Of a stretch of DNA of 64,000 nt, positions 31,240 through 57,059 are shown piece after piece. Under the pieces are notes generated by a model. That model was not told the DNA's origin and did not search any database. It worked only from the letters and a program-made list of their open reading frames with translations. This stretch comes from Euprymna scolopes. Taxonomy: Eukaryota. Both the position numbers and the translations under genes were made by a program. Within the stretch, counting starts at the first letter, position 1, and each line of letters begins with the position of its first letter. The stretch lies in the NCBI GenBank assembly GCA_053919585.1, contig CM132826.1; one strand, given 5' to 3'.

Positions 31240-32200
31240 CAGATTATGAAACCGTCAAAGCGGTGATTTTAAAGGCGTATGAATTAGTCCCAAGAGCATA
31301 CCAACCAAAAATTCAGGGGGTTAAGGGTAAGCGAAGGCCATGCCTATATAGAGTTTGCCAATCGGAAAGAAGCACTCATCAACCGTTGGTGTAGCTCTAA
31401 AGGTGCGGAGGGAGATTTAAAAAAATTGAAACAGCTCCTATTAATAGAAGAATTTCTAAACTGCGTCCCAGAAGACATGAGGCTACACCTGGCCGAAAAA
31501 GAGGAAGCGACAGTACTGGACATGGCTAAATTAGCGGACGAGTATGTTATCACCCACAAGGGTAGACCAGGATCGCATAAGCCTACACATCCACGTAGTA
31601 GAGAGGCCTATACACTCCATGAAAAACGTAGCGGTCCGCAAGCGCTTAGGGGGAGTCCGGCATTCTCAGCCAAACAACCGCCATTCAAACAGGAAGCCAG
31701 ACCTATCACATGTTTCAACTGTAAGAAGCTGGGTCACATAGCTGCAAACTGTTGGGCGAAGCGAGGCCCGGAACAAATTCGAAATCTTCCAGCTAAACCA
31801 CAATTGATGGTACACGCAAATGTAGAAGCGGAGTATAAACCCTTCACGTCGGGAGGATACATTTCCCGAAAGAAAAAGAGCCAGAGAAGGCTCATCAATC
31901 TCCTAAGAGACACGGGTGCATCCCAATCCTTAGTGCTAAGGAACCACGTGCCCTACGGGAATAAAAACAACCTCCAATAGGACAGTCACTATTAGAGGCA
32001 TAGAAGATAAGCCGATGAAAATTCCTCTAGTTAAAATTTACCTAGAATCAGATTGGATATCAGGCGAGATCATCGTGGGAGCCATTAGTAGCTTACCTAT
32101 GACCGGCGTGGCGATGATAGTAGGTAACGACATTGCCAAAAGCCGAATCAAACCCTCGAGCCAAATGAAGCCTGAATCCATGGGGGAACTCAAGGCATCA
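31240..32200 (+). pseudogene. gag: gag (SCAN/capsid-like C-terminal part, zinc knuckle) and aspartic protease, frameshifted and with stops
   Basis: ORF 31426-31980 contains CX2CX4HX4C and LRDTGASQS. It stops at 31978-31980 and continues in ORF 32015 (IPLVKIYLESD...GVAMIVGND). Confidence 0.85.
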
Positions 32201-32439
32201 GAAGATAAGGCATCGGCAATTGTAACGACGAGGGGGAAGAAGAAAGAGAGAGAGAAGTCTACTACTAGGTCACCAGAAAGGAAGGGCCAAACAAAAGAAG
32301 AGATAGGGCTGCGATCCAATCTATTGATACCGCGACAGGAACTAATTAGGGAACAACGAAACGGTGTCGATTTGAAACCCCTGTTTGGGCGGATCGGAAA
32401 TGAAGAATGCGATGGTAGGGCAGGACAATACTTCCTCAA

Positions 32440-33560
32440 TACCGGCGTATTAATGAGAAGGTGGAATCCTCCCAGTGTGACGGAGGGGATAGACTGGAGC
32501 GTGCGCGAGCAAGTGATGGTGCCGAAAGCATACCGGGAGGGAGTGCTAAAAGTTGCACACGTGATACCATTGCGGGTCACCTGGGTGTCACTAAGACGCA
32601 CGAAAAGCTCACGAGACACTTCTATTGGCCAGGAATCATGGGGGACGTGAAAATGTTCTGTTGAACATACAAGATACGCCAAGTGACAGGAAAACCCAAC
32701 CAGAAGATTCCTCTGGCGCCACTCCAACCAATACCGGCAGTGGAGGAACCTTTCGGTCGAGTGATTGTCGACTGTGTGGGACCGTTGCCTAAAACTAAAG
32801 CCGGCCATAAATATATAATGACTATAATGTGTGCGTCCACCAGATTCCCTGAAGCGATCCCATTGCGGAATATATCGGCGAAAAAGATAGTAGGCACCCT
32901 GATAACTTACTTTACAAAGGTGGGATTACCAAAAACAATCCAGACCGACCAAGGGTCTAATTTCATGTCAAAGATCTTCAGGCAGACGGCGGCACAACTG
33001 GGAGTCACGCACGTCAGATCCAGCGCATATCACCCGCAGTCCCAGGGAGCGCTGGAACGCTTCCACGCCACACTCAAAACTATGCTAAAAGCATATTGTG
33101 TGGAACATGATGACGAGTGGGACAGAGGTATTCCCTTCGTGTTGTTTGCGGCACGTGAAGCAGTACAGGAATCACTAGGGTTCATCCCATTCGAGCTAGT
33201 TTTTGGCCACCCAGTACGGGGGCCACTAAAACTAATAAAAGAACGATGAGTAAATGATGAGCTCATGCCGAACAATATGTCGGAATATGTGGCTAAAATG
33301 CGAAAAACCCTGTCAGAAGCGCGAGAGTTAGCCAGAGATAACATAGAGAATAGTCAGAAAACCATGAAAGCCGCATATGATAAGAAAACGATAGAAAGGG
33401 AATTCAAAGAAGGGGAGGAAGTCCTATTACTGTTACCCCTAAACGGTCAGCCATTTAAGGCCAGATACCAGGGACCCTATACAGTAGCCAAATAGATTAG
33501 CTCCATTAACTACCTAATAGATACTTCAGAACGTAGAAAGAAGACGCAAGTATGTTAATA
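32440..33560 (+). pseudogene. Retroviral-type integrase (zinc-binding region plus DDE core), fragmented
   Basis: AGHLGVTKT..HFYWPG in ORF 32461. ORF 32683-33249 has VDCVGPLP, QTDQGSNF and YHPQSQGALERF. C-terminal YQGPY in ORF 33265. Confidence 0.92.
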
Positions 33561-35068
33561 TGATGCGAAAGTACTTTAGAAGGACGGAAGAGAAAGCGGT
33601 GCTAATAACACCATGTATCCAGGGAGAACTCGAACTGACCAGCGCTGAGGGGGAAACCAGTGTTGCCAAGGACCCACCTAGTAAGTTAAACAACTCAGCG
33701 GTCTTGGGAAATTTAGATGCCAAATTTGCCCACCTACCTTCGAAGGAAGGGCAGAGTTTAAAAACAATACTCTCAAAGTACAGAGACTTATTCTCAGATG
33801 CGCCCAGATGCATGAATGCAGCAGTACATGATGTAGCACTGAAAGAGGATAAACCGATTAGACAACACCCATATCGCCTAAGTCCGAGAAAACTAGCAGT
33901 TCTAAAGGAAGAGATAGACTATATGTTAGATCATGGGATAATAGAACCCAGTCAGATTGAGTGGACATCACCGTGCGTGCTAGTAGACAAGCCCGATGGG
34001 ACAGTGCGATTTTGCACTGACTATCGAAAAGTAAACGCGCTCACCAAGGCCGACTCATATCCTATTCCCAGAATGGACGACTGTATAGATAAAATAGGGC
34101 GAGCAAAATATATCACCAAATGCGATCTCTTGAATGAGTATTGGGCGGTACCCCTAACAGAACGAGCCAAACAAATATCGGCATTTGTTACCCCTGAGGG
34201 AACATATCAATACCGAGTGATGCCCTTTGGCATGAGGAACTCGCAGGCCACGTTTGTATTAATGAATGCGTGTCTCGCAGGGATAGCAAATGTAGATGCC
34301 TACATAGACGACATAGTGATCTATAACGACACGTGGGCAGAGCATGTCGAAACAATAAGGAAAGTATAACCATAAACCTAGCGAAAAACGAATTCTGTCA
34401 GGCCGAGGTAAAATACCTAGGGCACGTGGTAGGACACGGGAGAATTACCCCACTAAAGGCCAAAACCCAAAAGATCGAAAACTGTTCTGAGCCTAAGGCG
34501 ATTCTTAGGTATGGCCGGATACTATAGGAAGTTTTGTAGGGATTTTGCGAGCATCGCCGCGCCCCTGACGGAATTATTGAAAAAGCACAGTAAATTCAGA
34601 TGGTCAGTGGAATGCCAGGAAGCATTCGAAACCATAAAACGAGCGTTAAGTACAGAACCAATACTGAAAACTCCTTCATTCAGTCAACCCTTTAGCTTAG
34701 CCGTAGATGCCAGTGACAAAGGCATCGGAGCAGTGCTATTGCAACCGGGGGAAGACGAGCAGCTTCATCCAGTTAGTTTCTATTCAAAAAAGTTTAATGA
34801 ATTCCAGAAATCCTATTCAATGATAGAGAAAGAAGCATTAGCGCTAATATCAAGCCTTCTTCACTTTGAGATATACGTGACCTCAGCGCCTACTCCAATC
34901 TCAGTATTTACTGATCATAATCCGTTCGTCTACGTGAATAGGATGAAGAACAAGAATAGAAGATTAATGTATTGGAGCCTTATGCTGCAGGAATTTAATT
35001 TAGATATCATGCACATTAGCGGCAAGAACAATGTGGTAGCAGATGTCCTATCGAGAAAACATGATTAA
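33560..35068 (+). pseudogene. pol: Reverse transcriptase and RNase H (pol), frameshifted
   Basis: PIRQHPYR, RFCTDYRKVN, VMPFGMRN, AYIDD, KYLGHVV, AGYYRKF, VDASD, EKEALA, TDHNP, NVVADVLSR. Confidence 0.95.
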
Positions 35069-36486: not shown

Positions 36487-37774
36487 GAGCAAGTAAACTT
36501 TTAGAACTTTAGACTAAACATACAACATAACATTAGTTTTATTTTCTCTGCCGGTCTCCCTCGACCCAGGACTGCACCATAATAAAGAAAGTCCCCGACA
36601 GCATAGACACAGCACTCCTTCTGGACACTAGCGCGCAAGTACATGTATTTGGTGACTTTAATGTCCACCACAAAAACTGTCTTGGATTCTCTACTTACAC
36701 AGATGCAGCGGGCAGCACAACACATAGCTTCACTATATCTCATTCCCTATCACAAATTATTACGTTTCCAACCCGTTTCCCTGACCAGCAAGAATAACGC
36801 GCATCACTTCTAGATCTGTTTCTGACTACAGTTCTCGAGGATTGTATAACAAATGCTGACAGCCCACTCGGGAACGCTGATCATGCAATGATAACGGTCG
36901 AAATCGCCCTAAACTCTAAAGCCAAACCTGAAGAACCAGTGCTCAAAACAACGAGATATTATAAAAAGGCTGACTGGGAAGCCATTAGAGATCTTATCAG
37001 AGATGCCCCATGGGGAAATATTTTTCCTCTTCCTGCTGAACAGTGCGCAAATGAGATCACTGAATGGTTCAAAACGGCAATTGAAGCACCTGTTCCCATG
37101 CGGAAATTTTATAGCAAGCCCCACTTTCCCCAATGGTTTACTTCGACTTGCGCAACTGCCATTGCTCAAAGGCAGCATGCATACCGCAGATTTTACCGAC
37201 ATAAGTCCAGTTCAAACAGACAGAAGTATATATAAGTTAGAAGTAACGTTTAGAAAGAAATAGCGACGAGGTTGTTTGCTCAGCAACCGATAAGGCTAAT
37301 ATGCTTGCCAGTCGGTTTGCTTCAAACTTCACACTGAACCCTTCCAATAACCCCCTACCTGACTTTCCTTTGCGGACAGACGCCACGCTAAATGATCTAA
37401 AAATCACCCCTGCTAAGGTGCATGCTATCATAAAAAACCTTCACACTTCAAAAGCATGTGGACCCGATCTCATCCTAGCTGTGCTATTAAAAAAGTGCTC
37501 AGCCGAAGTAGCTCCAGTTCTCTCCAAACTCTACAATAAATGCCTTAATGAAGCTTGTTTTCCGGGCTGTTGGAAAACTGCTTCTATGGTACCAATATTC
37601 AAGAATTCTGGCGAAAGAACTGACCCAGTAAATTATCGTCCCATTAGCCTCCTCCCACTTTTTGCCAAAATATTTGAGACCATAATTAACCATGCTCTAG
37701 TCCAGCACCTTACAGATGCTAAACTTCCAAGTGGCAATATGACTTGTTTAAGGAGAACGTTAGTAAAAAAAAAA
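36487..37774 (+). mobile_element. CR1/L2-group LINE copy A: APE endonuclease and N-terminal RT joined directly to the family 3' end and poly(A)
   Basis: APE motifs VFGDFNVHH, LDLFLT and PLGNADH, then YKKADW. RT motifs KACGPD, PIFKNSG and NYRPISLLP. It ends CAAGTGGCAATATGACTTGTTT..A10, matching the 3' terminus at 41503-41552. Confidence 0.88.
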
Positions 37775-37998
37775 CCATGGATATCATTTAGGAAAAGATG
37801 TGTGACGTCAAAAACAAAGAATTAGTTCTACCGCGAGATCATAAATGGGCTGTGAAAAACTGTCTGAATATATAAAGAAGCTTTTTAATTTCGGAAATGT
37901 TGTGAGGCGCTAAAAGATTTACCTCAGAATAGCAGTGGCGTTTTATAATGGACGAATGTTAATTTGGAAAAAATGTGTGGTGACAAAAGAATTTTTTA
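37775..37998. repeat. Diverged relic of the 40-bp satellite family (old variant)
   Basis: Units such as GGAAAAGATGTGTGACGTCAAAAACAAAGAATT and GGAAAAAATGTGTGGTGACAAAAGAATTTT. Confidence 0.65.
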
Positions 37999-39149
37999 CA
38001 AGGGAGTCAATACTCATCAAGGTCTGAAGGCCACTCGAGGATAAGGGTTAATGATTGTACGGTCGTTATCGGGACAGCAGCGTAGTAATCGTTAGTAGTG
38101 ATGTCGCAAATTAACTTTGTAACAGTTAATATCGACGAATATTGACTCGGCTAACGAGAGATAAGAAATGAAAACAATGCAATTTAAAGAAAAAAATAAT
38201 TACAATTTTATTAAAGAAGAGAAAAAAAAATAAATAAAAGGGAAAAGATTGGGATTTTAATTCAAGTTGGTAACAGACTGTTCATATGAGCTTAAACCCA
38301 CGTAAAATTTGCTGCAAAATACAGTCCTATCTTGCTAGCCCAAAGGCAGGTTAACTTTGTTGGAAGAGTGTAAGTCAGAATAAAAAAGAGAATTAAGAAC
38401 TTACTTGAAAAAAATATTTTGACAGTTTAGAGAACAGAGAGAAATTAATAAAATGTTACCATTTTTTTACTGCTGAATTGTCTCCCTTGGACTGTATTTA
38501 TTATTTTACACACCACGCATATAATTTTTTATCGGCTCCTCGTTAGGGGTTAGTTCCTTTTGTTGCAAACAGGGACTCGGGTTGTTTCCAGACTCCCAGC
38601 CGTACTTCTCACATAGAACGGTAACAGTATTCTGTTTTTTTTTTTGTTTTTTTTTAGAACTCTAAGCTGGTAGAGAATGCTCCGTTTGAGTTCGTTGACT
38701 CCAGCTTTTCTCTCCGAACGTTAAAAGATTTTTCCTTGTGTTTAAAAACTTCTCTCAATACTCTCTTGATTTTTAGAACATCTGTCTCTGCGCACCTTTA
38801 TCCTTTAAGGACTCACACGGTCCTCTTTTCTTGTTCTTCACTTGAGTTTTAGGACTTATCTGTCCGAGTTCAGCTCAACAGCATAGGTCTAGACTCCGAA
38901 ATCTCAGCTGCAACTGACTTAATTAGGTTTGATTTGCAACCTTTTTTGGCGAAAAAATCCATCGTCCAATGGATGCACAGAAAAACAGTCACGTGTCAGC
39001 AGTAGCAGCGGCTCTTCTAACATCATAGAAGAAAGGGGCAGGGAAGAAGAAGTAAAGGTAGAGGAAGAAATAAATAGTCTAAAATAAATTCTGACAGTGG
39101 AAATTTAGTATAATTTCATTATTTAATGGGACAACTCATTCAGAACTTG

Positions 39150-39745
39150 TTTACATTGGGCTTGAACACGACCATATTTTAGTCAGCTAGAAAGCAGGCC
39201 CGCAGAATAAAGCTCTACAGGCAGGCAGTTCTAGAAAAAAAAGCTTTGTTTATGGAATACAAGTTTAGATTAAGGTACATATAAAAAGCGGGGGAAATTA
39301 TTGATAGTGGTTGTAGGTAGACGAGTGTTTTGTGAAAGTTTCGCAAGGAGGAACCATAGACTGGGGCTCAGAGGTTGCAGATAAAAGAAAAAGACATCAC
39401 TTACCAGATTTTGCCGTCAGTTTATATCTATCAAAGCATGGTAGGTGATCCAAGCAGCTCCTGCCAAGACATACTTGGCTTTCATACAGGTAGAGGATGG
39501 TATCGGCTTGAGCGGGAGAATGATTCAACCATTTTTTCGGCGATCTTGGCAAAGGATTTGATATATGTGCTCTATTTTACATCAGGGGTGAAGGTCAGAC
39601 CCAGATACTTATCAAAGCATGAACCTACCCTAAGACAAAAGCCAGTCGTTTCAATTAGGGCCAGAGCGTTGATGATTTAAGTAGAGGAGCTTTGTTTTAA
39701 ATGCATTAAAATTAACCAGACACCTTTTTCTCCATTGCACTACGT
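39150..39745 (-). mobile_element. Degenerate LINE RT C-terminal fragment
   Basis: Minus strand reads KYLGLTF near 39590-39613 and a SFFSRTA-like motif near 39220-39250. Confidence 0.6.
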
Positions 39746-39764
39746 GCCCGAAACCAGATATCTA

Positions 39765-40062
39765 TAAAAAGTTGTTCAGTTCAATAAATGATGACCTTCG
39801 ATACAGAAAAGCCGTGTGGAATATGAAAATCCATTTTAGCTGAAAAAAAAACCCAGTTGTTTAGAGTCATAAAAATGAATTCCATGTCAAAAATGTGGCG
39901 CCAAGAATGATAGATTTAAGGTGAAATAACTATGTGACGTCACGAACGATGAATTTCCGATTGAAAAAGTTTTGTAACAATGAACTCCAGATTCAAAATG
40001 TATGTGGCGTTAAAAACAATTGATTTTAGATTGAAAAGGTTGTGTGGTGTCAAAAACACCAG
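39765..40062. repeat. Diverged relic of the 40-bp satellite family (old variant)
   Basis: GTGAAATAACTATGTGACGTCACGAACGATGAATTTCC and TTGAAAAGGTTGTGTGGTGTCAAAAAC, at about 40-bp spacing. Confidence 0.7.
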
Positions 40063-40416
40063 TTTTTTTTTTTTTTTTTAAGATAAAAGCATAGTCTCTC
40101 TCTCTCCATTCAATTAAATTCTACTTTACACATCGATTGCATTCGAATAATAAGGGATTAATTATCATTGTATTTAATTTTTTAATACTGAACTTTAAGT
40201 AATATATATTATCAGAATACCAGAATGACTTATAAAGACCCCTCTGTCTTATATTAACTGAAACGTGTTACATTTTACGTATACCTTCATAAATTAACAC
40301 ACCGTAAATGTTAATAATTGCAACAAAATTATCTTCATCATTTAACGTTATTGGATTAAGTATTGACATGTCTGTCCTCTACTGCTGCAAAAAATATACG
40401 TATTAATAATACCCAT

Positions 40417-41563
40417 TTACATAAACTAGAGTAGACCCAATCTTCCATAAAATATTACGAATAATAAATCCTTCTTAGATAAGAGAAAAATCCAGGTTGT
40501 CCTCGACGATCGTACATCTAAACAATATGATATAAATGCGGGAGTGCCTCAGAGGGTCTATCCTTGGACCTCTGCTGTTCCTGATATTCATAAATGACCT
40601 CCCCGACAAAATTGCCTCTGAGATGGGTATATATGCTGATGACACCACACTCTATAGCAGGCACGACAGGAAAACAAATAAACATATATCTAAAGTAATG
40701 GCAGAAACACTAGAGGATGACCTCCAATCAGTAGTGGAATGGGGACAAAAATGGATGGTCACGTTCAATGCCGCCAAGACAAAACTGGTTTCATTCAATA
40801 ATTACAAGAAACCTTCTCTACCACCTATAGCAATGGCCAACGACTCTTTATCTGAGAGTACGTCTCTCAAGCTCCTTGGCCTAACGTTCACAGGAAACAT
40901 GAGTTGGAACAATTACATCGAGAGCATTGCCAGGGCCGCTGCGAGGAAGGTAGGCTCTCTCTACCGTGCTAGAAAACTTCTAACACCCGAAAGTATCCTG
41001 TACCTCTATAAGGCCACTATTCGCCCATGTATGGAGTATTGCTGTCAAATTTGGGCTGGTGCATCGACTACTAGTATCTCACTCCTTGACAGGGTTCAAA
41101 AGAGAGTCGCCAATCTGATAGGCCCTAAACTGGCATCTAAGCTTCAGCCTCTGTCCCATCGTCGAAACGTTGCATCCCTCTGCCTGTTCTACAAGTATTA
41201 TAATGGTGAATGCTCTGATGAACTGCAAGCACTTGTGCCCCCACGACGTGAACACCCTCGACAGACCCGACAAGCTGCAAAATCCCACCCCACACTGTAG
41301 AGATCCCTAGATGTAAAAGATCTTTCTACTCCAGTAGTTTCTTCCCCAGAACTGCTAGACTTTGGAATTCCATTCCAGGTCACTGCTTCCCCAACTGTAC
41401 TGACATGCATAAGTTCAAGTGCAACGTGAACCAACATCTCGCTGCCCTAATCCCTACATAGTACCCCAGTAGATGTTTCCCCTGATAGTAGCCCCCTACA
41501 CCAAAGTGGCAATGTGCCTTGTTTGGGGTGAAAATGTAATAATAAAAAAAAATTTAAAAAAAA
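40417..41563 (+). mobile_element. CR1/L2-group LINE copy B, 5'-truncated (RT core to 3' UTR and A-rich tail)
   Basis: LHKL, INAGVPQ/GSILGPLLFLIFINDLP, IYADDTT, LLGLTF, LYKATIRPCMEYCC, SSFFPRTARLWNS. The 3' end AAGTGGCAATGTGCCTTGTTTGGGGTG is followed by A runs. Confidence 0.93.
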
Positions 41564-48690: not shown

Positions 48691-49097
48691 AATTGTTTAT
48701 ACCCAAAATTTGGAGGTAGGACTGGCTTAACATGTACCTGCACGAATTCTGAAGTCGCATATGTCTAATAGGAATATATCGACAAGCGCATCCGAGCGTT
48801 TGAAGAATACGTCCAGACTTTTAGTGAGCACATCCGGGCACTCATCGATCCACGAGTGGGAAATCGGATGGCATTTGCTCACCAATAAATTGTGCGGAGA
48901 TGCCTATTGGGACAGTTGCTTTCGTATTATACATAGGGTCCGCTCCAAATATCTACTGAATATCTTGGAGGCCTTGAGTGTCGCGATGCGCAAACCCTCG
49001 CTCTGTAGGCAGAAAAAGCTCTCCCACAAATATATATATATATATATATTTTCTGTAGACTGTTTTTGAACCCAGTCAACGACGGGTGCTTCTGCCA

Positions 49098-49180
<83 letters not shown>

Positions 49181-49184
49181 AATA

Positions 49185-49310
49185 GCCGTATAGTGTAATG
49201 CTGAGAAGCCTTGACTGTCATTTGGGCGGTCAGGTTTCGATCCTGGCTTGAGGCAGTTTCCTAGCCGTACTGATGAGCTGTGAAACAGCGAGACAGTACT
49301 CTATGTGGAT

Positions 49311-49313
<3 letters not shown>
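49185..49313 (+). mobile_element. tRNA-headed hammerhead SINE, copy 1 (core mutated)
   Basis: TAGTGTAATG..GACTGTCAT..GGTTTCGATCC, then CTGATGA-GCTGTGAAACAGC-GAGAC-AGTACT-CTA-TGTGGATGAC-(TA)n. Confidence 0.85.
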
Positions 49314-49381
<68 letters not shown>

Positions 49382-49382
<1 letters not shown>

Positions 49383-51357
49383 TGGCAGAAGCACCCGTCG
49401 TTGACTGGGTTCAAAAACAGTCTACAGAAAATGGACTGTGATTGATGAAAGTATGATAGGCTATAAAAAGGAGGGGGTTGTAAAGAGATAGGTTTTTAAA
49501 CTCAAAACTTTTACCCCCAAGCAAAATATGATGAAAGTAAAGATAGTTTTCGCGTAAATATATTTTTATATCAACTTTGTTTCCGTTCATAGCCAAGAGT
49601 GACCAACAAAATGATGTTTCCTTACAAATAGAAAATGCTATACATATAATGATATAAATATACAAGAAATAAATGTTACCATAGTCAATAAAAATTACTT
49701 TTATGGTAGAAAAGTTCATTGGTTTGTATTTTTAAGTAGTTTTTAAAAAGAATTGTATTTTTAATTCACGAATCGGTTTTAAAAAAATCAAAATGGCAGC
49801 GACTTTGAAATGGAGAGCCCCGTTTTCAATTTGAAGGAGGGCACCTGAGCATTTTGTGTTAACAATTTAAGGGAGTTCCGTCAACGTAAGGAATATTTAT
49901 ACGCATATTTTAATGTTTTCAGTTATTTTGTGCTTGAGGAATATTCGATTATGGCATGTGTAGTTTATATAAAAATTCATTTAAATAGTTATCGCCTAAA
50001 ATTTCGTTTTAATTTCGGTTCACTGAAATTATTTCAATTAAAGAGCATTAAAAACTATTTCAAAACAAAAGAAAAAACATGAACTGAACTTTTATTGACT
50101 ATGGTAACATTTATTTCTTGTATATTTATTTTTTCGGGTAGTCGTTTGTTGGCTTTTCTGTTAAACACTCTTACTAAATAATATCGACGAAATATCGAAA
50201 AACAAAGAAACAAAAACAGTTTTGAAAAATAATGAAGCTTTACTTACTTTAGTAAAATAATCCGAAACAGAAAAATAGGATATTAAAAAAGTAAACACGT
50301 AATTACTTTAAAAAGCAAAGAATCGATATAAATATGAATGAGAAGAAAGTAGAACAGTTCGTTTCAGTTGTACAGTATTGAACGGTATAGTATTACGCCG
50401 TCGGATTCAGGGCTGTAATATTGTAATGTAAAGAACACGCAGAAAGAGTTGTAATAAACTGAATTCCTTCTAGTACATTGACAAAAAAAGCTTAAACAGA
50501 TATATAAATAAAAATAAAAAGGTTATGTAAATGTTTTTAAAAAGACACGTAATAAAGTGAGCAGGATTTTTTCCTTCTTTTTACAATATAACAAGTAACG
50601 TTCTTATTTTTTATTATTTATCTATTTTAAAAGAGTGCCACGTGCAAATGGAGAAGGAAAAAAACAGAGTTATGCAAAATTTGTGTCGAGAATTGTCTAA
50701 AGTTCCGACTTTTCTTTTTTTGACTTTCACTTTAATAAGAACACGAATTTATGAGGTGAATTTATTCGACACAATATGATTCAACTCAAAAAAAAAATAT
50801 AAAAGCTAACGTGAATTAAGATTAAAGTTAAGGTGTTATTGTCGACCCTCGCCCCTTTTAAAAAACCTTGTTAAACTTTGTGACATATTTACATTCTATG
50901 GAGGCCAGGCGCGAAAGAACACCCAATAATTTTATTATACCATATTTGTTTAAACTGAAACATAATTATCAACATATACTTACGCAAATAGATATGAAAA
51001 GTCTTTGTTAATGTTTGTGCCATATTTCCATGGAGTACAGGCGCGAACGCAGACCCCACAATTTTATTATACCATTCCTATTTAAGTTGAAACATACTAT
51101 CAAAGTATTCTTATGTACATCTATATCAAAAACCATTGTAAACGTTTTTATTTTCATTTTTTATTTCCATACTTTGTTAACCAGGCGCGAACGCAGACCC
51201 CACAATTTTTATGAACCATCGTTTTGCCAGATCAAACATGCCCATTCTTGATCCTCGATACATCTTCTATCATTATATGTAATCAGTTTTTTTTTAAATA
51301 GTCAACTATATAGGAGCCTATTCGTGACCAGACATACACACACACACAGACGTTCAG

Positions 51358-51370
<13 letters not shown>
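49382..51370 (-). mobile_element. About 2-kb non-autonomous Helitron-like element inserted in (TA)n
   Basis: Minus-strand 3' end ACCCAGTCAACGACGGGT hairpin plus CCAG|T. The other end is CAGACATACACACACACACAGACGTTCAGCTTTATATA. Internal repeats CAGGCGCGAA..CCC..AATTTT at about 50906, 51038 and 51182. Confidence 0.6.
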
Positions 51371-51432
<62 letters not shown>

Positions 51433-51449
51433 ATAGTAATCATTAAATA

Positions 51450-51495
51450 CCTACAGACACTAGTGTTTCATCCTTTCGGGAATCATCAGTGCAGG
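51450..51495 (-). ncRNA. Type I hammerhead ribozyme, second family
   Basis: Minus strand CCTGCA-CTGATGA-TTCCCGAAAGGAT-GAAAC-ACTAGT-GTC^TGTAGG. Stem I is CCUGCA/UGUAGG and stem III is the palindrome ACACTAGTGT. Confidence 0.8.
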
Positions 51496-51918
51496 GTGTC
51501 ACGATTCGAACCCGGCAACAAAGCCATCTATGACTCCGTTAGCAAAATTATTTTCCTAAATCTGTCGATATTATGCCTGATTTTTTATTTAATATCCTAA
51601 TATTGGCGACATTTTTCTTTTCTTTTTCCATTTCTCCACCCCATGTTGTAAAAAATTAGTTTAAACGATAGTTATTAATATTTTGCTTTTGTTAATCGTA
51701 TTCGCCGATGTCGTTTTTTTTCTTGATAATGTATCGGTCGAAAGACGTCTCGAGTTTATATTTTAATAGATTTATTTTCTTTTTTAATCGTTAATTTATT
51801 CTTAAATCGTTTTTATCAACGTCTTTTGTGCTTCCCCCTCGACTTTCTATATGATTCTTTCTCAACTCAACATGACTCCAGCTATTTTGTATAAAACTAA
51901 TATATATATATATATATA

Positions 51919-51973
51919 GTCATCCACATACAGTACTGTTTCGCTGTTTCACAGCTCATCAGTGCGGCTAGAC
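51919..51973 (-). ncRNA. Type I hammerhead ribozyme, predicted cleavage between 51929 and 51928
   Basis: All core nucleotides present (CUGAUGA, GAAA, GUA). Stem I CCGCA/UGUGG plus GUC/GAC beyond an internal loop, stem II GCUGU/ACAGC, stem III ACAG/CUGU. Confidence 0.88.
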
Positions 51974-52052
51974 AGGCAACTACCTCAAGCCAGGATTGAA
52001 CCCTACCGTTTGCACGGCAGTCAAGGCTCCTAACCATTACGCTATTGACGGC
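51919..52052 (-). mobile_element. tRNA-headed hammerhead SINE, copy 2 (intact core)
   Basis: Minus strand GCCGTCAATAGCGTAATGGTTAG (A box)..GGTTCAATCC (B box)..GTCTAGCCGCA-CTGATGA-GCTGTGAAACAGC-GAAAC-AGTACT-GTA^TGTGGATGAC-(TA)n. Confidence 0.9.
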
Positions 52053-52096
52053 TGCTTGAACGAGTAGTGAGTTTAACGATATTTTGATATCGTCTG

Positions 52097-52158
<62 letters not shown>

Positions 52159-52191
52159 TTATAATGGAATAATAAAAATGTAATTTCCATG

Positions 52192-52257
<66 letters not shown>

Positions 52258-52370
52258 TAAGCTATTAAGCGAATCCCACTATTAATTTGTTTGTAAACAA
52301 GCTGATGGTTAGAGCACTTTTGCGGCTGGTGAGTGTGGATTTAATACACACTCAAGCACTGATTCGTATC

Positions 52371-52487
52371 CTGTTGGTGAGAGCTGCCGACTGTCAATGC
52401 GACGGTTGTAGGTTCGATCCTCGGCTGGGGAAAAGTTTATGTCTAGCCGCACTGATGAGTTGTGATACAACGAAACAGTAATGTGGA
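52371..52487 (+). mobile_element. tRNA-headed hammerhead SINE, copy 3 (variant subfamily; CTGT of stem III deleted)
   Basis: TGGTGAGAGC..GACTGTCAA..GGTTCGATCC..GTCTAGCCGCA-CTGATGA-GTTGTGATACAAC-GAAACAGTA-ATGTGGA. Confidence 0.85.
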
Positions 52488-52837
52488 AGAGAAACTGTCA
52501 TTGTTCCCATTTACCTTGTCCTTTTTCAGCCAAAATTTTTTCGAACGTTTATTTTTTTTTCATGAAATTTGCTTCTCATAAAATCCAATAATATAATTGA
52601 ACAATCTCTCGACATGTGTCGCTTGTGAAATAATATTGAATTCTAATGCTTTCACCGTGCAAACTTTCGCACATTTAAGTATGTATTCTCTTTTTTTCAT
52701 CAGTTGTCTGAGAAAACAAAACAGAAAAACAACGAAATAAATTGGCCAGTTTGTTGTAGATCAAACTAGCCCATGTACCCAGCGTTGGCTGGCTATCAAA
52801 TAGATTATATAGCTTTTACATTATTATTAATTATTAG

Positions 52838-52978
52838 TTGTCTGAATAATCACGTTGCCACATCGGATTTCGTAAGATCACCGAAGTTAAGCAATGTGGG
52901 ATCTTGTCAGTACCAGACTGGTGACCAATTTGGGAATACAAGGCGCTGTATGTAGGAGGACGTCGACGTCTCCCTGCA
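52838..52978 (+). mobile_element. 5S rRNA-derived degenerate head (SINE3-like), copy 2
   Basis: CATCGGATTTCGTAAGATCACCGAAGTTAAGCAATG..CAGTACCAGA..GTGACC..TGGGAATACAAGGCGCTGTA. Confidence 0.82.
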
Positions 52979-53547
52979 AACGTTGCAAAAACCTAACGTC
53001 TTCATCTCCTCTGATGGTGATATAGTTGCAACTAGTTGCTTGTAAATTTAATATTCCCATGAAACTTCCTCTTTCAGATGAAGCCGATTGAACCCACCTA
53101 GGGTTAGTGCTGCAGTTTCATTACATTTTTTTTATTCTCCCGATTTCCATTGCTCTCCACCTTTTTTGATAAACATTAAAAATCACTTTGCGTTATTGCA
53201 ACAGCCACTTTCAATTGATTTCTTGCTGACAATGACCATTGGTTTTCTATGGATTTTGGGTGGCAATAAGCCTCTCCAAGGTTCCCGTACTATCTGCACT
53301 CTTCCAAGTGCTTTTTTTTTCTTCCTTTGTAACTCTTCGCGACTATTGTGTGTGGTCTCACAGCCATGACTGCGACCTTCTATTTTTTTAGGATGAAAAG
53401 TTTATTTCTCACAGTTTCAATTCTCTTGGGCTCGAGTGGTGTTCCCGTCCATGATTTTTTTCTATTTCTATTGTTGGCTGATTAGTGTTCGTAGTTGACT
53501 TGGTTTCTGCAATCGAGAATCTTTTTTTAAGATTTCAATACTACTAC

Positions 53548-53582
<35 letters not shown>

Positions 53583-53852
53583 ACAGAAACAATACATGTT
53601 GGTATAGCAGTATCAGCTGATGTAAATGCGATGGAAAACTTAAATCCTAATATATGAATTATCGTGGTAGATTTTGAAAGTGAGATTTAAAGAGAAATCC
53701 GCCAAGCATATTGATGTTTGATTCGGACTAGTCAATTTTTTGTCTTTTTCCCCCAATGTGTTATTGGCACGTATATATGCTATTTTGTTTTATTCTTATT
53801 CTGGGGGAAAAACTGTGATAGTCAAGATAGTTTTCTTTACTCTTCGAAAGGT

Positions 53853-53899
<47 letters not shown>

Positions 53900-54084
53900 C
53901 TCGCCTCCATATTATTACTTGTTCATTAATAAAAATTCATTAAAATCAAGTTGTAAAACAAACTTTTAAAAAATTCTATTTCACAAAGTAATTTAATTAC
54001 AAAGTTAATGTCGCCGAAATTAATTTCCGTTTCTACGTTAAGTCATAAGACTTTTTTCTATTTTTCTTTGTAAACGTCGAATAG

Positions 54085-54167
<83 letters not shown>

Positions 54168-54170
<3 letters not shown>

Positions 54171-54224
54171 ATCCAGATTACAGTACTGTTTCGTCGTATC
54201 ACAACTCACCAGCTGGAGCTGCTT
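54168..54224 (-). mobile_element. Hammerhead SINE, copy 4 (internally deleted)
   Basis: Minus strand AAGCAGCTCCAG-CTGGTGA-GTTGTGATACGAC-GAAAC-AGTACT-GTA-ATCTGGATTAC-(TA)n. Confidence 0.75.
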
Positions 54225-54238
54225 GTTTATTTACGAAC

Positions 54239-54402
54239 NNNNNNNNNNNNNNNNNNNNNNNNNNNNNNNNNNNNNNNNNNNNNNNNNNNNNNNNNNNNNN
54301 NNNNNNNNNNNNNNNNNNNNNNNNNNNNNNNNNNNNNNNNNNNNNNNNNNNNNNNNNNNNNNNNNNNNNNNNNNNNNNNNNNNNNNNNNNNNNNNNNNNN
54401 NN
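54239..54402. other. Assembly gap (N run)
   Basis: Run of n characters. Confidence 1.
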
Positions 54403-55433
54403 TAATTACACGTTATATTAAAAGATTAAAAACATAATTTATATCCTTAATTTGTTAAATAAGCCATCGTAGCACGTCTTGGATCTGTCTGATTAAATTA
54501 ATTATTAAATCATAGACGCCTTCTAGGAATCAATGAACCGAAAACATCAAACGGCCTGAATTATCTCCCTTTAGCTGTTACAGGAAATAAAATCGACCTC
54601 TTTTCCAACAGAATTAACTAGTAGCAATTAACAACATAATTGGATTATCTCCCTTCATAATCGTCTTTAGTAACGATATGAACACATATTTAAGTAGAAT
54701 GACAATGAATTTTAATACATTAAATAATAACAAATAAATTAGAATACCTTACTCGAAATGCTGTACAAGGATTTATATATATAATATAGCCTTTTTATTT
54801 ATTCTCATATTCAATTAAACTTTAAACCGAAAAAAGGTCTTAAATCTAAGTACTAAAATAACGATAATCTGTAAACATTACTTGCCACTAATACGAAACT
54901 AAAATTAACCGTAACATGATTGCAAGGTTGTTACGGCCATACTATAAATATAGACATAAAAATAAATAAAAAAATATTTTCGTAAAAAAAATGAATTATT
55001 GGGAAATAAAGAAACAGCGAGATCTAATTTAGGAACACAGCGAATGGGATATATAAAAAAAAATTTTTTAATGGCTTAGGGTTTTCTGTGGAAACTTCTC
55101 ATGACTCTGTTCTTAAATAAGGATACGAAAATTAGGTGATATATTAATATTTAAATGGGCTTTTCCGTAGCTATTGCAAAGGTAAATGTTTCTCACATGC
55201 TTTTTCCGTTAAGGGAATTTTTCCTTTTCTTTCGTTTTTCTTTCTCTTCAAAAATGTTCTATTGTCAAAAGTTTTTTTATTCATAAAGTCGGAAGAAATG
55301 CTGGTTTTTAACAATTTTCAAACGCTATAATGTTTGAAATTGTCGGCTGGACATGGATACAATTGTAACGTAAAATGAAATACACTTTTTGTTGCCACGA
55401 ACACCTTTTTTGAAGTCTTGATTTGCTTTCACA

Positions 55434-55504
<71 letters not shown>

Positions 55505-55508
<4 letters not shown>

Positions 55509-56379
55509 CGGGGAGGGGGCGGCTTTGTCCTGTCGTAAAATACGCTTAAATATGATATTTTGATTCGTCCAGATTTCGTATATATTATTATGGAGTTGTG
55601 ATTTCACAGTAAAAAAAAAAGTATTTGGGTTCCATCAGCGAAAATCGAAACCGAAGTCAAAACTGTAACATTCAAAGCTTGTAACGTTACCACTGCACCA
55701 ACATGACACGCTTATGAACAGATTAAAGTAAACTTAAATGAAAGTACAAAACGTATAACGATTTTTTCAATTTTGAAACTTAAAAACTATTTTAACCGGG
55801 TGAAGACCCATACAAGACCGGCCCATAAAAATCCAATTATTTGAGGCCCCGAGCATCGCTCTGCGACTTTTAGTTTCGGAGGAGATAGAGTTTAGAAAAC
55901 ATGGAGATGAACAGTCATAGAGAGTTTTTTTTTTAATTAGACAAGCGGGGGGGGGGCTTTTCCCGGTCGTAAAATACGCTTAAATATGATGTTGTAATTT
56001 GTCCAGATTTCGTATATATTATTATATAATTGTGATTTCAAAAGTAAAGAAAAAATTTGGGGGGGGGCATGAGTTAGAATCGAAACCGAAAGCAAAGAAT
56101 TCAAAGCTGGTTACGTTACCACTGTACCAACGTGACACGTATATCAACTGCTTAAAAATTAAAAATAAACTAAAATAAATGTACAAAATGTATAACGATT
56201 TTTTTCAATTTTAACTTTTTGACCCCTTAAAAACTATTTTAACCGGCTAAAGACCCATAAAAAACGGTTAATAAAAAATCCAATCATTTGAGGCTCCTAG
56301 CGACGATCTGCGATTTTTAGTTTCGGGAGAGATAGAAATATTGAGACAGACAGGTGTATAACCTTTTAAATATATATAG
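55505..56379 (-). mobile_element. Tandem pair (~437-bp period) of Helitron-like non-autonomous units, each with a tRNA-like segment
   Basis: GTCGTAAAATACGCTTAAATATGAT at 55531 and 55966, collinear similarity throughout, degenerate TAG plus GC-rich end. The pair ends CTTTTAAATATATATAG. Confidence 0.6.
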
Positions 56380-56500
56380 CGAAATGGTTAGAAGCTTCGA
56401 CTGTCATTTAGGCGGTCGAGTTTCGATCCTTGTTTGAAATAGTTGCTTGTCTAGCCGCACTGATGAGCTGTACAGCGGAGCAGTACTGTATGTGGATGAC
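56376..56500 (+). mobile_element. tRNA-headed hammerhead SINE, copy 5 (core mutated)
   Basis: ATAGCGAAATGGTTAG..GACTGTCAT..GTTTCGATCC..GTCTAGCCGCA-CTGATGA-GCTGTACAGC-GGAGC-AGTACT-GTA-TGTGGATGAC-TATA. Confidence 0.85.
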
Positions 56501-57059
56501 TATAATGCTCCTTATCTTAGGTTGAGCTGAGCATATTGGGAAGTGATATACAAATACAATATATATATATATTGTTTAATGTATTAGATTATTCTACACC
56601 AAATATAAGTCCAGATATGCTTGTTTAATGTATTAGATTATAAGTCCAGATATGCTCCGGATCTTTCAAAACACGCAATCTCTTCTTCAGAAGGTAATAA
56701 CACAATTTTGAAAAAAAATCATCTTCTCATATTTTTAACATAAAATCAAAATAATAAAAGTTAATGATTTTATGCTTTGAAAGTATCAAATCATTTAAAA
56801 TATTAAAAAAAATATTGCACATTGTTCCAAACAATAATTTGAAGCATGAAATTAAAATAGTAATATTTTCCTTTTGTCATCAAAATATCAATTTGTGCCA
56901 TTCTAAAGACGTCAGTAGATGGTGTTTTTTTTAATATTTAAATTTCAAATTAATTGTATTAGGAATCTTTTCACCATGATCTTGAAAATACATTTATAAA
57001 CACTTTTTATAACATCTTTGAAAGTGTATACCACACAGGATCAGTTATTCTATTGACAT

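Follow-up and report, generated by a model that had tools for sequence, protein, structure and literature searches.

The window analysed here, the whole stretch of 64,000 nucleotides from Euprymna scolopes, probably contains six insertions that belong to four related families (A, B, C, and D) of a non-coding, non-autonomous retroelement. The reading that we favor, and consider likely, is that these families are tRNA-headed non-LTR retrozymes of the Schistosoma Sm-alpha type that were inserted at (TA)n through target-primed reverse transcription. A full unit measures 284–323 nt and comprises a body, a tRNA-related segment with A and B boxes, and a type I hammerhead motif 18–36 nt beyond that segment. 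The initial annotation had proposed a compact SINE of about 135 bp; this size does not hold, as the window copies are truncated parts of the 284–323-bp units, which are found as tandem arrays. Its broader idea of a retroposed non-coding repeat family is supported, as is the fusion of a tRNA-like segment, with A and B boxes, to a type I hammerhead motif; the likeness that it drew to Sm-alpha is apt. The suggestion that the family is possibly undescribed in this host stands within the literature that could be searched, while the element type itself is already known from blood flukes (Schistosoma) and animal retrozymes.

The tandem arrays occur elsewhere in the genome with periods of 284, 285, and 321 bp and matches of 97%–100%, and some arrays on contig C1 reach about 20 units, whereas the window contains single partial units only. 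Units have a GC content of 37%–45%, and the longest stop-free stretch in a trimer of every unit is at most 92 codons. Copy number was checked genome-wide. Searches of the element's own genome gave 586 first-look candidates for family A, 2,638 for family B, and 865 for family C, and the genome contains 29,989 exact matches to a pattern of the core plus stem II but 0 to the reversed pattern.

Table 1. Element copies in the 64-kb window and the two motifs of copy 2
Feature	Position	Strand	Assignment and extent	Identity or basis
Copy 1	49190-49317	+	old family-A-like fragment, unit positions 167-284 plus 14	84% to L022 unit
Copy 6	51425-51545	-	family C, unit positions 233-323 plus 31	92% to family C unit
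Copy 2	51915-52101	-	family A, young, unit positions 111-284 plus 14	97.3% to L022 unit
Copy 3	52254-52484	+	family B, unit positions 68-304	86% to family B unit
Copy 4	54157-54212	-	5'-truncated fragment from core onward	82-84% to units D and A
Copy 5	56376-56555	+	old family-A-like fragment, unit positions 167-284 plus about 60	83% to L022 unit
Putative type I hammerhead of copy 2	51919-51973	-		sequence; family covariation; predicted dimer
tRNA-like head of copy 2	51993-52044	-		box regex match; box-spacing statistics

When four real family units were used as BLAST queries, exactly six copies were found in the whole window, all inside 49190–56555 (Table 1). The five elements listed in the initial annotation are present where it placed them and can be aligned with one another, but its count overlooked copy 6, and its sizes of about 60–135 bp are too short for copies 2, 3, and 5, all of which extend further. 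Judged by sequence, cleavage is still possible for copies 2 and 6 only. The hammerhead core C3-U4-G5-A6-N7-G8-A9...G12-A13-A14 and the N-U-H triplet are retained in these two copies and broken in copies 1, 3, 4, and 5, which are predicted to be dead. Copy 2 consists of a partial body, a head, and an intact hammerhead, with (TA)n on either side, and shares 97%–98% identity with 40 other genomic copies. Copy 6 has an intact core (CUGAUGA, GAAA, and GUC, with a predicted cut between 51456 and 51455), a head reduced to its B-box half (GGTTCGAATC at 51503–51512), and a 3' end joined to (TA)n; it scores 20.3 bits against Rfam HH9, under the threshold.

Among the remaining copies, copy 1 has an A/B-box head, and its alignment indicates a hammerhead inactivated by changes of GAAA to GAGA and G16.2 to C and by a shortened stem I 5' strand. 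This copy is embedded in a (GA)n/(TA)n tract, centrally between the detected arms of an inverted-repeat element. The start of copy 3 directly abuts a (TA)n tract and its head is present with an A box altered from TAGCC to TATCC. Compared with 20 family B copies, its hammerhead is dead through a 4-nt deletion that abolishes stem III and the cleavage-site register, the stem I 3' strand has diverged, and an additional internal deletion is found upstream of the head. Copy 5 also has a head, followed by an aligned hammerhead that is dead through the loss of 3 nt from loop II and a change of GAAAC to GGAGC, and continues beyond the ribozyme into the unit body. The homology of copy 4 begins precisely at its CTGGTGA core at 54212 (CUGGUGA in RNA, A6 to G), leaving neither a stem I 5' strand nor a head, and its 3' end is joined to (TA)n. 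An N gap (54239–54402) starts 26 nt upstream, and neither these 26 nt nor the 298 nt past the gap show significant similarity to any family unit. Copy 4 could continue inside the gap, and no result here rests on continuity across it.

The hammerhead of copy 2 is formed by a stem I with its 5' strand at 51963–51973 and its 3' strand at 51919–51928, the CUGAUGA core at 51956–51962, a stem II (GCUGU/ACAGC) followed by GAAA, and a stem III that is a short helix (ACA/UGU) with a palindromic GUAC loop; cleavage is predicted after GUA, between 51929 and 51928. As initially claimed, its catalytic nucleotides are complete (CUGAUGA, GAAA, and the GUA site) and stem I has an internal loop (5 bp, a 3x2 internal loop, and 3 bp). 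Covariation computed on 57 distinct family hammerheads supports the predicted helices in a three-helix type I layout with stem I open and loops closing stems II and III. Paired cells reach 90.2%, compared with 80.4% in shuffles (0 of 500 reach the observed value) and 22%–45% with partners slid. Both-sided changes occur in 9 of 15 pairs, in stems I and II, with stem III nearly invariant, and stem I pair 11-52 is CG in 25, UA in 18, and GC in 6 sequences, although these counts represent a few family-level events rather than many independent ones. The core is likewise conserved in the family alignment, being unchanged across the four diverged families apart from U7, the sole core position that varies among sub-lineages (CUGAAGA in part of family C) and a tolerant position in hammerheads.

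None of the Rfam models reached its gathering score; the hammerhead matches (Hammerhead_3 and HH9) score 19–25.5 bits against thresholds of 48.5–52, with copy 2 at 22.4 bits for Hammerhead_3 (threshold 48.5). Sub-threshold scores of this size are plausible where stem III has 3 bp. The minimum-free-energy structure predicted for one ribozyme by itself differs from the hammerhead, and its z-scores are not significant. Two cofolded family A sequences, and likewise two of family C, are predicted to form two hammerheads sharing a 10-bp stem III, at −38.6 kcal/mol versus 2 × −14.7. The stem III loop is palindromic in both families despite unlike sequence (GUAC in A and CUAG in C).

The head resembles a tRNA in having A and B boxes at tRNA-like spacing only and is, on the evidence of its sequence, a degenerate tRNA-related segment. 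The boxes of copy 2, TAGCGTAATGG (A) and GGTTCAATCC (B), start 42 nt apart. A regular expression for the two boxes matched twice in the window compared with 0.02 matches expected, and the spacing from A to B box is 42–44 nt in families A, B, and D and 53–54 nt in family C. The reported CTGTCA is indeed found in three copies (1, 3, and 5), with CTGCCG in copy 2. The assignment to tRNA-Asp was not confirmed, and neither was Pol III transcription: a tRNA covariance model gave no match even at E<=10 (331 bases), and ARAGORN at default settings found no tRNA in the heads. At relaxed thresholds, the only ones at which the head of copy 2 is called a tRNA, the calls disagree (Gly-GCC for family A and a 4-nt anticodon for family B, with Met-CAT for the family D unit at a still looser setting).

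The manner of integration was examined in 79 independent insertions on many contigs. The 3' end is fixed: it lies at the first UA-rich patch past the predicted cleavage site, 10–36 nt downstream of it, where the element is fused to (TA)n. Of the family A insertions, 24 of 26 end at unit position 14, whereas 13 of 21 in family B end at position 13 and 10 of 24 in family C at position 36. The 5' ends are scattered over 68 distinct positions. (TA)n is present at the 3' flank in 61 of the 79 insertions (77%) and at the 5' flank in 35, against a background of 6.6%. Insertions are 0.14–4.9 units long, and lengths above one unit are common, although most remain below two. Thus, contrary to what had been suggested, the copied RNA does not owe its 3' end to cleavage, because the integrated copies run past the cleavage site to the UA-rich patch.

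On the retrozyme reading, a (TA)n-specific endonuclease/reverse transcriptase would nick the microsatellite, after which the TA 3' end of the DNA would anneal to the UA patch of the element RNA and prime cDNA synthesis back through the ribozyme, head, and body. Since the priming patch is located downstream of the cleavage site, the RNA that is copied would have to be either a multimer that has escaped cleavage or a circle closed by re-ligation. Repeated passes around a circle or reading along a multimer could produce arrays of identical units, whereas early stops of copying could produce short head-plus-ribozyme fragments such as those in the window. Multimeric transcripts would be cut down to single units, ready for circularisation, by the hammerhead, which probably works as a dimer through its palindromic loop III. 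The A and B boxes may allow transcription of every unit by Pol III. The enzyme probably comes from a Penelope-like element. No such element was found in the window or in 70 loci, and the reverse transcriptases present in the window are those of a Gypsy-like LTR element and a CR1-like LINE. The initial annotation saw no TTTT after the ribozyme, which applies to family A only; families B, C, and D have a TTTT run 20–77 nt past the cleavage site. Such a run could halt Pol III before a full unit is transcribed, and this counts against the reading that we favor, as do the low Rfam scores, the negative tRNA searches, the predicted fold of the single ribozyme, and the poly(A) reads described next. 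The unit is present in Logan contigs of four runs recorded as RNA (X6, X7, X9, and X14). Among 183 poly(A) RNA reads placed, 89% run into unlike flanking sequence (chimeric), and the reads show neither a pile-up of ends at the cleavage site nor a unit-length signal, although such a library cannot settle cleavage.

Microsatellite insertion bias and a partial tandem structure, both present here, are expected of a Penelope-like-dependent element. It is conceivable, if rather unlikely, that the families are Penelope-like-dependent SINEs in which the hammerhead-shaped 3' module merely serves as a recognition or priming handle for the reverse transcriptase, with no self-cleavage and no circles, and in which arrays arise by template jumping or from read-through multimers. 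The UA-patch 3' ends just past the hammerhead, the (TA)n targets, and the partial tandems fit this explanation equally well, the poly(A) reads are without sign of cleavage, the lone ribozyme is not predicted to fold as a hammerhead, and Penelope-like elements carry such motifs in a role that is not established (PMC7761336, PMC8557442). Against it stand a catalytic core that is unchanged save for U7, the covariation of stems I and II, and a loop III that is palindromic in both A and C, as dimeric cleavage needs.

An ordinary tRNA-derived SINE, in which Pol III would produce an RNA of about 135 nt from the head, the hammerhead would cut its 3' end, and a LINE would copy it, is improbable. The box spacing is tRNA-like, fixed 3' ends with variable 5' truncation resemble target-primed reverse transcription, and LINE reverse transcriptases exist in the window. 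However, the short copies are fragments of 284–323-bp units, many insertions are longer than one unit and reach 4.9 identical units, (TA)n is the target in nearly all cases, and every integrated 3' end lies past the cleavage site, so that the cleaved RNA cannot be the template. The families also lack the features of a classical LINE-dependent tRNA SINE, namely a tail shared with a LINE or a poly(A) or simple-repeat tail of their own, and unit-length dispersed copies: their 3' end falls at a UA patch inside a longer repeating unit, and insertions longer than one unit are common. Finally, it is very improbable, despite the existence of tandem arrays, that the families are a satellite that spread as DNA, through unequal exchange or extrachromosomal circles, and that the hammerhead and boxes are inert passengers, given that the 79 dispersed insertions have a common 3' boundary and scattered 5' truncations, that most are shorter than two units and sited within (TA)n, and that units within an array are 97%–100% identical compared with 81%–98% for separate insertions of the same family against the window copies as queries (97%–98% for young family A).

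We now return to the retrozyme reading and the closest known systems. Sm-alpha units are about 300 nt in size. The families here resemble Sm-alpha and Sj-alpha, as these are described, in this unit size, in a tRNA-like head that bears Pol III-type boxes upstream of a type I hammerhead whose stem III is short, and in tandem and dispersed copies numbering tens of thousands. Sm-alpha is described as SINE-like, derived from a tRNA, and equipped with a hammerhead, and S. mansoni contains more than 38,000 hammerhead candidates (PMC2770079); Sm-alpha and Sj-alpha are credited to Ferbeyre et al. 1998, as cited in that paper. In contrast to the flukes, the host belongs to another phylum, several families coexist with class I-like (42–44 nt) and class II-like (53–54 nt) box spacing, and a strict (TA)n target is documented. 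Moreover, Sm-alpha heads are identified as tRNA-Gln-TTG by tRNAscan-SE (PMC2770079), whereas the heads here fail the tRNA model.

Animal non-LTR retrozymes, described in mussel, coral, and axolotl, are tandem 170–400-nt repeats with type I hammerheads that are expressed as RtcB-made circles (Cervera and de la Pena 2020, PMC7229834). The families here share with them tandem non-coding units of about 170–400 bp with a type I hammerhead in each, a low GC content, the expectation of dimeric action with a short stem III, and a proposed route from multimeric transcript through self-cleavage and an RtcB-made circle to reverse transcription. They differ in their tRNA-like/Pol III head, which is unmentioned in PMC7229834, and in being known from DNA anatomy rather than from circles. 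Retrozymes have also been proposed as non-autonomous Penelope-like derivatives (bioRxiv 10.64898/2026.07.22.740005). Penelope-like elements carry hammerheads and prefer microsatellites including (TA)n (PMC8557442), and their hammerhead motifs were reported by Cervera and de la Pena 2014 and Lunse et al. 2017, as cited in PMC7761336. Type I hammerheads with a minimal, dimer-capable stem III, partial tandem insertions, and the (TA)n bias are common to these elements and the present families, although the latter are without a reading frame. Penelope-like hammerheads usually lack stem III, whereas 3 bp and a 4-nt loop are found here.

No tRNA-like head is known from newt satellite 2 or cave-cricket pDo500 repeats. 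These repeats are similar in their tandem organization, type I hammerhead, short stem III, and dimer-dependent cleavage (PMC7761336), the dimer being a prediction in the present families. They form long satellite blocks, whereas the copies described here are mostly dispersed, truncated, and located in (TA)n.

BLAST of four reference units against the whole 64-kb window located exactly six copies, all of which lie between 49190 and 56555. Each reference is one real genomic unit representing one of four related hammerhead-bearing repeat families, namely A (284 bp, from fetched locus L022), B (313 bp, from L034), C (323 bp), and D (321 bp), the last two from L052. The five elements named in the initial annotation are present and mutually alignable, although copies 2, 3, and 5 extend further than it had stated, and copy 6 is a sixth element beyond its list.

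Family insertions in the window and the state of their hammerheads (unit positions are numbered from the predicted cleavage site)
Copy	Position	Strand	Family and identity	Unit portion	Hammerhead	Defects
1	49190-49317	+	A-like, 84%	167-284 plus 14	dead	GAAA -> GAGA; G16.2 -> C
6	51425-51545	-	C, 92%	233-323 plus 31	core intact	none
2	51915-52101	-	A, 97.3%	111-284 plus 14	core intact	none
3	52254-52484	+	B, 86%	68-304	dead	4-nt deletion; stem I 3' strand lost
4	54157-54212	-	D/A-like, 82-84%	from core onward	dead	A6 -> G; stem I 5' strand absent
5	56376-56555	+	A-like, 83%	167-284 plus about 60	dead	GAAAC -> GGAGC; loop II deletion

When copy 2 was searched against its own genome, 40 scored matches at 97-98% identity were recovered from 586 candidates, many of them exactly 284 bp apart. 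Locus L022 contains 4.9 family A units with 100% matches, and further arrays with periods of 284, 285, and 321 bp show 97-100% matches. Given this 284-bp spacing and the tandem arrays in the genome, the short pieces in the window are fragments of longer units. Read from the cleavage site, the family A unit consists of UGUGGAUGAC-UAUA, a body of approximately 150 nt, the tRNA-like head, a 35-nt linker, and the hammerhead ending in GUA. Families A, B, and D align over the whole unit, whereas the resemblance of family C to them is mostly confined to the ribozyme and the B box. Own-genome searches returned 2,638 candidates for family B and 865 for family C, both of which are older and mostly dispersed. 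The 5.9-Gb genome has 29,989 occurrences of the core motif CTGATGAGYTGTGAWACARCGAAACAG and 0 of its reversed control.

The copies cluster in 49000-56700 because this region is rich in (TA)n, with 12-mers of the repeat accounting for 6.0% of it versus 1.9% window-wide, a threefold enrichment. Copy 1 sits in the (TA)n centre between two inverted arms of 120 nt (49048-49167 and 49313-49432) that are 93% complementary. Each arm is made up of (TA)n and, on the outside, approximately 50 nt of unique sequence, as in a MITE-like palindromic element. The arm sequence recurs in the L034 flank, adjacent to a (TA)n tract. Family similarity in copy 4 starts exactly at the CTGGTGA core (54212), close to an N gap at 54239-54402. 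Neither the 26 nt between the copy and the gap nor the 298 nt beyond the gap showed significant similarity to the four units, and a candidate extension to the gap, based on 9 nt that match the body of family B, was rejected as no better than shuffled sequence. No result presented here rests on continuity across the gap.

Copy 2 retains a complete catalytic core, as the initial annotation had claimed: CUGAUGA, GAAA, and the GUA site are all intact, with a stem II of GCUGU/ACAGC. Its stem I also carries the proposed internal loop (five pairs, a 3x2 loop, and three pairs), its stem III consists of three pairs (A-U, C-G, and A-U) capped by a GUAC loop, and the predicted cut falls between 51929 and 51928. 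Conservation of this structure was assessed with a hand-drawn model over 57 distinct hammerheads from families A-D. Paired cells reached 90.2%, compared with 80.4% in shuffles (0/500 of which attained the observed value) and 22-45% when partners were slid. Both sides changed in 9 of the 15 pairs, although these changes represent a handful of family-level events rather than many independent ones. The stem I pair 11-52, for example, is C-G in families A and B, G-C in D, and U-A in C, and three stem II pairs also switch among families. Among core positions, sub-lineages differ only at U7, and hammerheads are known to tolerate change at position 7. This U7 -> A variant (CUGAAGA) defines part of family C and is found in several independent insertions (L005:1238-1299, L060:1510-1571, L065:1545-1606, and L067:1506-1567 and 1798-1859).

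The Rfam search suggested in the initial annotation was not supportive, as the hammerhead models scored 19-25.5 bits against thresholds of 48.5-52 and none reached them; across the whole window, no Rfam match was obtained at gathering thresholds. The minimum-energy fold of a single ribozyme is likewise not a hammerhead (z-scores from -1.5 to +0.9), the linear fold of the unit has a z-score of -2.15, and family C places U opposite U at 10.1/11.1. When two copies were cofolded, two hammerheads sharing a 10-bp stem III were obtained for family A (ACAGUACUGU) and family C (ACACUAGUGU), with a family A cofold energy of -38.6 versus 2 x -14.7 kcal/mol. Loop III of family D is non-palindromic. These predicted cofolds agree with the dimer mechanism described for newt, Penelope-like-element, and vertebrate retrozyme hammerheads (PMC7761336, PMC7229834).

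Upstream of the ribozyme, every family carries a head 18-36 nt away. The A box reads TAGCGTAATGG in family A, TAGCCTGTTGG in family B, and TGGCCGAATGG in family C, and the B box occurs as GGTTCGATCC, GGTTCAATCC, or GGTTCGAATCC. The starts of the two boxes are separated by 42-44 nt in families A, B, and D, which is the spacing of class I tRNAs, and by 53-54 nt in family C, which is that of class II tRNAs with a long variable arm. A loose regular expression for the boxes matched twice in the window against 0.02 expected, once in copy 2 and once at 56077-56129(-), the latter being a tRNA-like repeat unrelated to the families. From the A and B boxes, the elements may be transcribed by Pol III. The earlier remark that no TTTT terminator follows the ribozyme holds for family A, which has no T4 run, but not for families B, C, and D, which have one 20-77 nt past the cleavage site.

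Outside the two boxes, evidence that the heads are tRNA-derived is weak. They lack an acceptor stem and their anticodon-arm region folds differently in each family. ARAGORN with default settings found no tRNA in the window or the loci; under relaxed settings it made many false calls with inconsistent isotypes, reporting tRNA-Gly(GCC) for the family A head and a 4-nt anticodon for that of family B. The family C head (GGCCGAATGG ... UUGCUAA) resembles tRNA-Ser-GCU and looks unrelated to those of families A, B, and D, in which the anticodon-like sequence is CUGUCA or CUGCCG. CUGUCA is common to family B, family D, and copies 1 and 5, and is therefore probably ancestral. The initial annotation had taken this sequence to indicate tRNA-Asp; we do not accept the assignment, as sharing of CUGUCA is no proof of it and, even when 331 bases were searched, the Rfam tRNA model matched no single unit at E<=10.

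Several other tRNA- or 5S-like features were observed. The interval 55515-56336 is a direct duplication of approximately 435 bp at roughly 80% identity, formed by a SINE-like repeat without a hammerhead; its second copy bears the minus-strand A/B-box segment at 56077-56129, and the first appears similar by eye. At 52837-52954(+), a 5S rRNA-like sequence (31.5 bits against a gathering score of 38; E = 0.002) represents a 5S pseudogene or a 5S-derived SINE, and a similar piece flanks a family B copy in locus L041. Elsewhere in the host genome, contig C11 contains a very large tRNA gene cluster at 1.68-2.16 Mb, with at least 60 matches to the tRNA model scoring 64-80 bits, nearly all on one strand.

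To describe how the elements integrate, we used 79 independent insertions that do not touch locus ends, taken from 70 fetched loci; the sample is biased towards copies with head and ribozyme because those served as queries. The 3' end of family A falls at unit position 14 in 24 of 26 insertions (GAUGACUAUA directly abutting (TA)n). Family B ends at position 13 in 13/21, family C at position 36 in 10/24, and family D at positions 20 or 26. In each family this fixed end is the first UA-rich patch past the ribozyme, and the patch and the TA repeat have 2-6 nt in common. The 5' ends are scattered over 68 different positions, family A having a hot spot at 111-114 (unit sequence UAUUU), and insertion lengths range from 0.14 to 4.87 units. 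The repeat (TA)n flanks the 3' side in 61/79 insertions and the 5' side in 35/79, compared with a 6.6% rate at positions drawn randomly from these loci.

Judged from these integrated sequences, the anatomy bears the hallmark of target-primed reverse transcription into nicked (TA)n, primed by annealing of the UA patch. A nicked (TA)n end would anneal to the patch in the element RNA and prime cDNA synthesis. Since the priming patch lies beyond the cleavage site, the copied RNA would have to span that site, either as an uncleaved multimer or as a re-closed circle. This contradicts the earlier suggestion that cleavage defines the RNA 3' end, as the integrated 3' ends are located 10-36 nt downstream of the site. 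A possible record of in vivo cleavage in the 5' ends was rejected, with 7/79 within 15 nt of the site against approximately 5% expected, which is not significant in this biased sample. No Penelope-like open frame was found in the 70 fetched loci and no Penelope-like element in the window, where the reverse transcriptases are Gypsy-like and CR1-like. The former belong to LTR retrotransposon fragments at 31426-35068 (zinc knuckle, integrase, RT, and RNase H) and the latter to LINE fragments at 36888-41300.

The unit is present in 18 public runs, four of which are on record as RNA. One raw-read poly(A) run yielded 183 reads, 89% of which continue into unlike sequence. At the 3' junction their loose ends consist of (TA)n, and coverage does not extend beyond the ribozyme and the portion of the head next to it. 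The reads are mostly chimeras, that is, read-through transcripts of solo copies, with no informative joints among them. Read starts or ends do not pile up at the cleavage site in this run, whose library is blind to Pol III products and circles. At the ribozyme of L022 (1216-1306), minus-strand first mates outnumber plus-strand ones by approximately 3:1 in this poly(A) run (X21). If that library is stranded, mRNA-embedded copies are mostly antisense, perhaps because transcripts have lost sense-oriented ribozymes or are selected against carrying them.

Families A-D are best read as a tRNA-headed hammerhead retroelement of the Sm-alpha/retrozyme type. The fusion of head and ribozyme noticed in the initial annotation is confirmed, and its interpretation as a self-cleaving Pol III retroposon is partly supported. 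The closest design is that of Sm-alpha and Sj-alpha in schistosomes, which are tRNA-derived, SINE-like, hammerhead-bearing, and present in tens of thousands of copies (PMC2770079). The closest mechanistic frame is offered by animal non-LTR retrozymes, although tRNA or Pol III heads are unmentioned in the retrozyme papers (PMC7229834, PMC7761336). Penelope-like elements also carry type I hammerheads, insert in partial tandem form, and favour microsatellites including (TA)n (PMC8557442), and they are argued to be the source of vertebrate retrozymes in a 2026 preprint (10.64898/2026.07.22.740005). Our literature search returned no account of such elements in cephalopods or other non-bivalve molluscs.

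The fusion of a tRNA-type promoter to a hammerhead would now extend beyond flatworms and be tied to the animal retrozyme and Penelope-like-element picture. SINEs are almost absent from decapodiform genomes, according to a cuttlefish genome paper (PMC13218726). With approximately 30,000 intact core motifs in 5.9 Gb, the families matter for repeat annotation, and their clean anatomy, a fixed UA-patch 3' junction just past the cleavage site facing (TA)n, provides a testable priming model. The window itself is ordinary, holding six fragments of which four are dead, and the family is of more interest than the locus. The class I-spaced heads of families A, B, and D and the class II-spaced head of family C raise the rather speculative idea that a Pol III promoter and a hammerhead were joined more than once. 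If true, the combination of a tRNA promoter, a hammerhead, and a UA priming patch would be a design that recurs and is favoured by selection, in which an element drives its own transcription, trims its own RNA, and relies on a Penelope-like enzyme for copying into (TA)n. On that reading, and if the host is a decapodiform cephalopod, these elements would be the SINE equivalents of a lineage said to be nearly free of SINEs.

Finally, we note additional hammerhead-like motifs with different stems in locus flanks (L016:1131-1194(-), L049:1317-1380(+), L049:2425-2485(+), and L052:2278-2340(+)), one of which has a palindromic CCUAUAGG stem III and scores 25.4 bits with Rfam HH9. Hammerhead families in this genome thus outnumber the four studied here.
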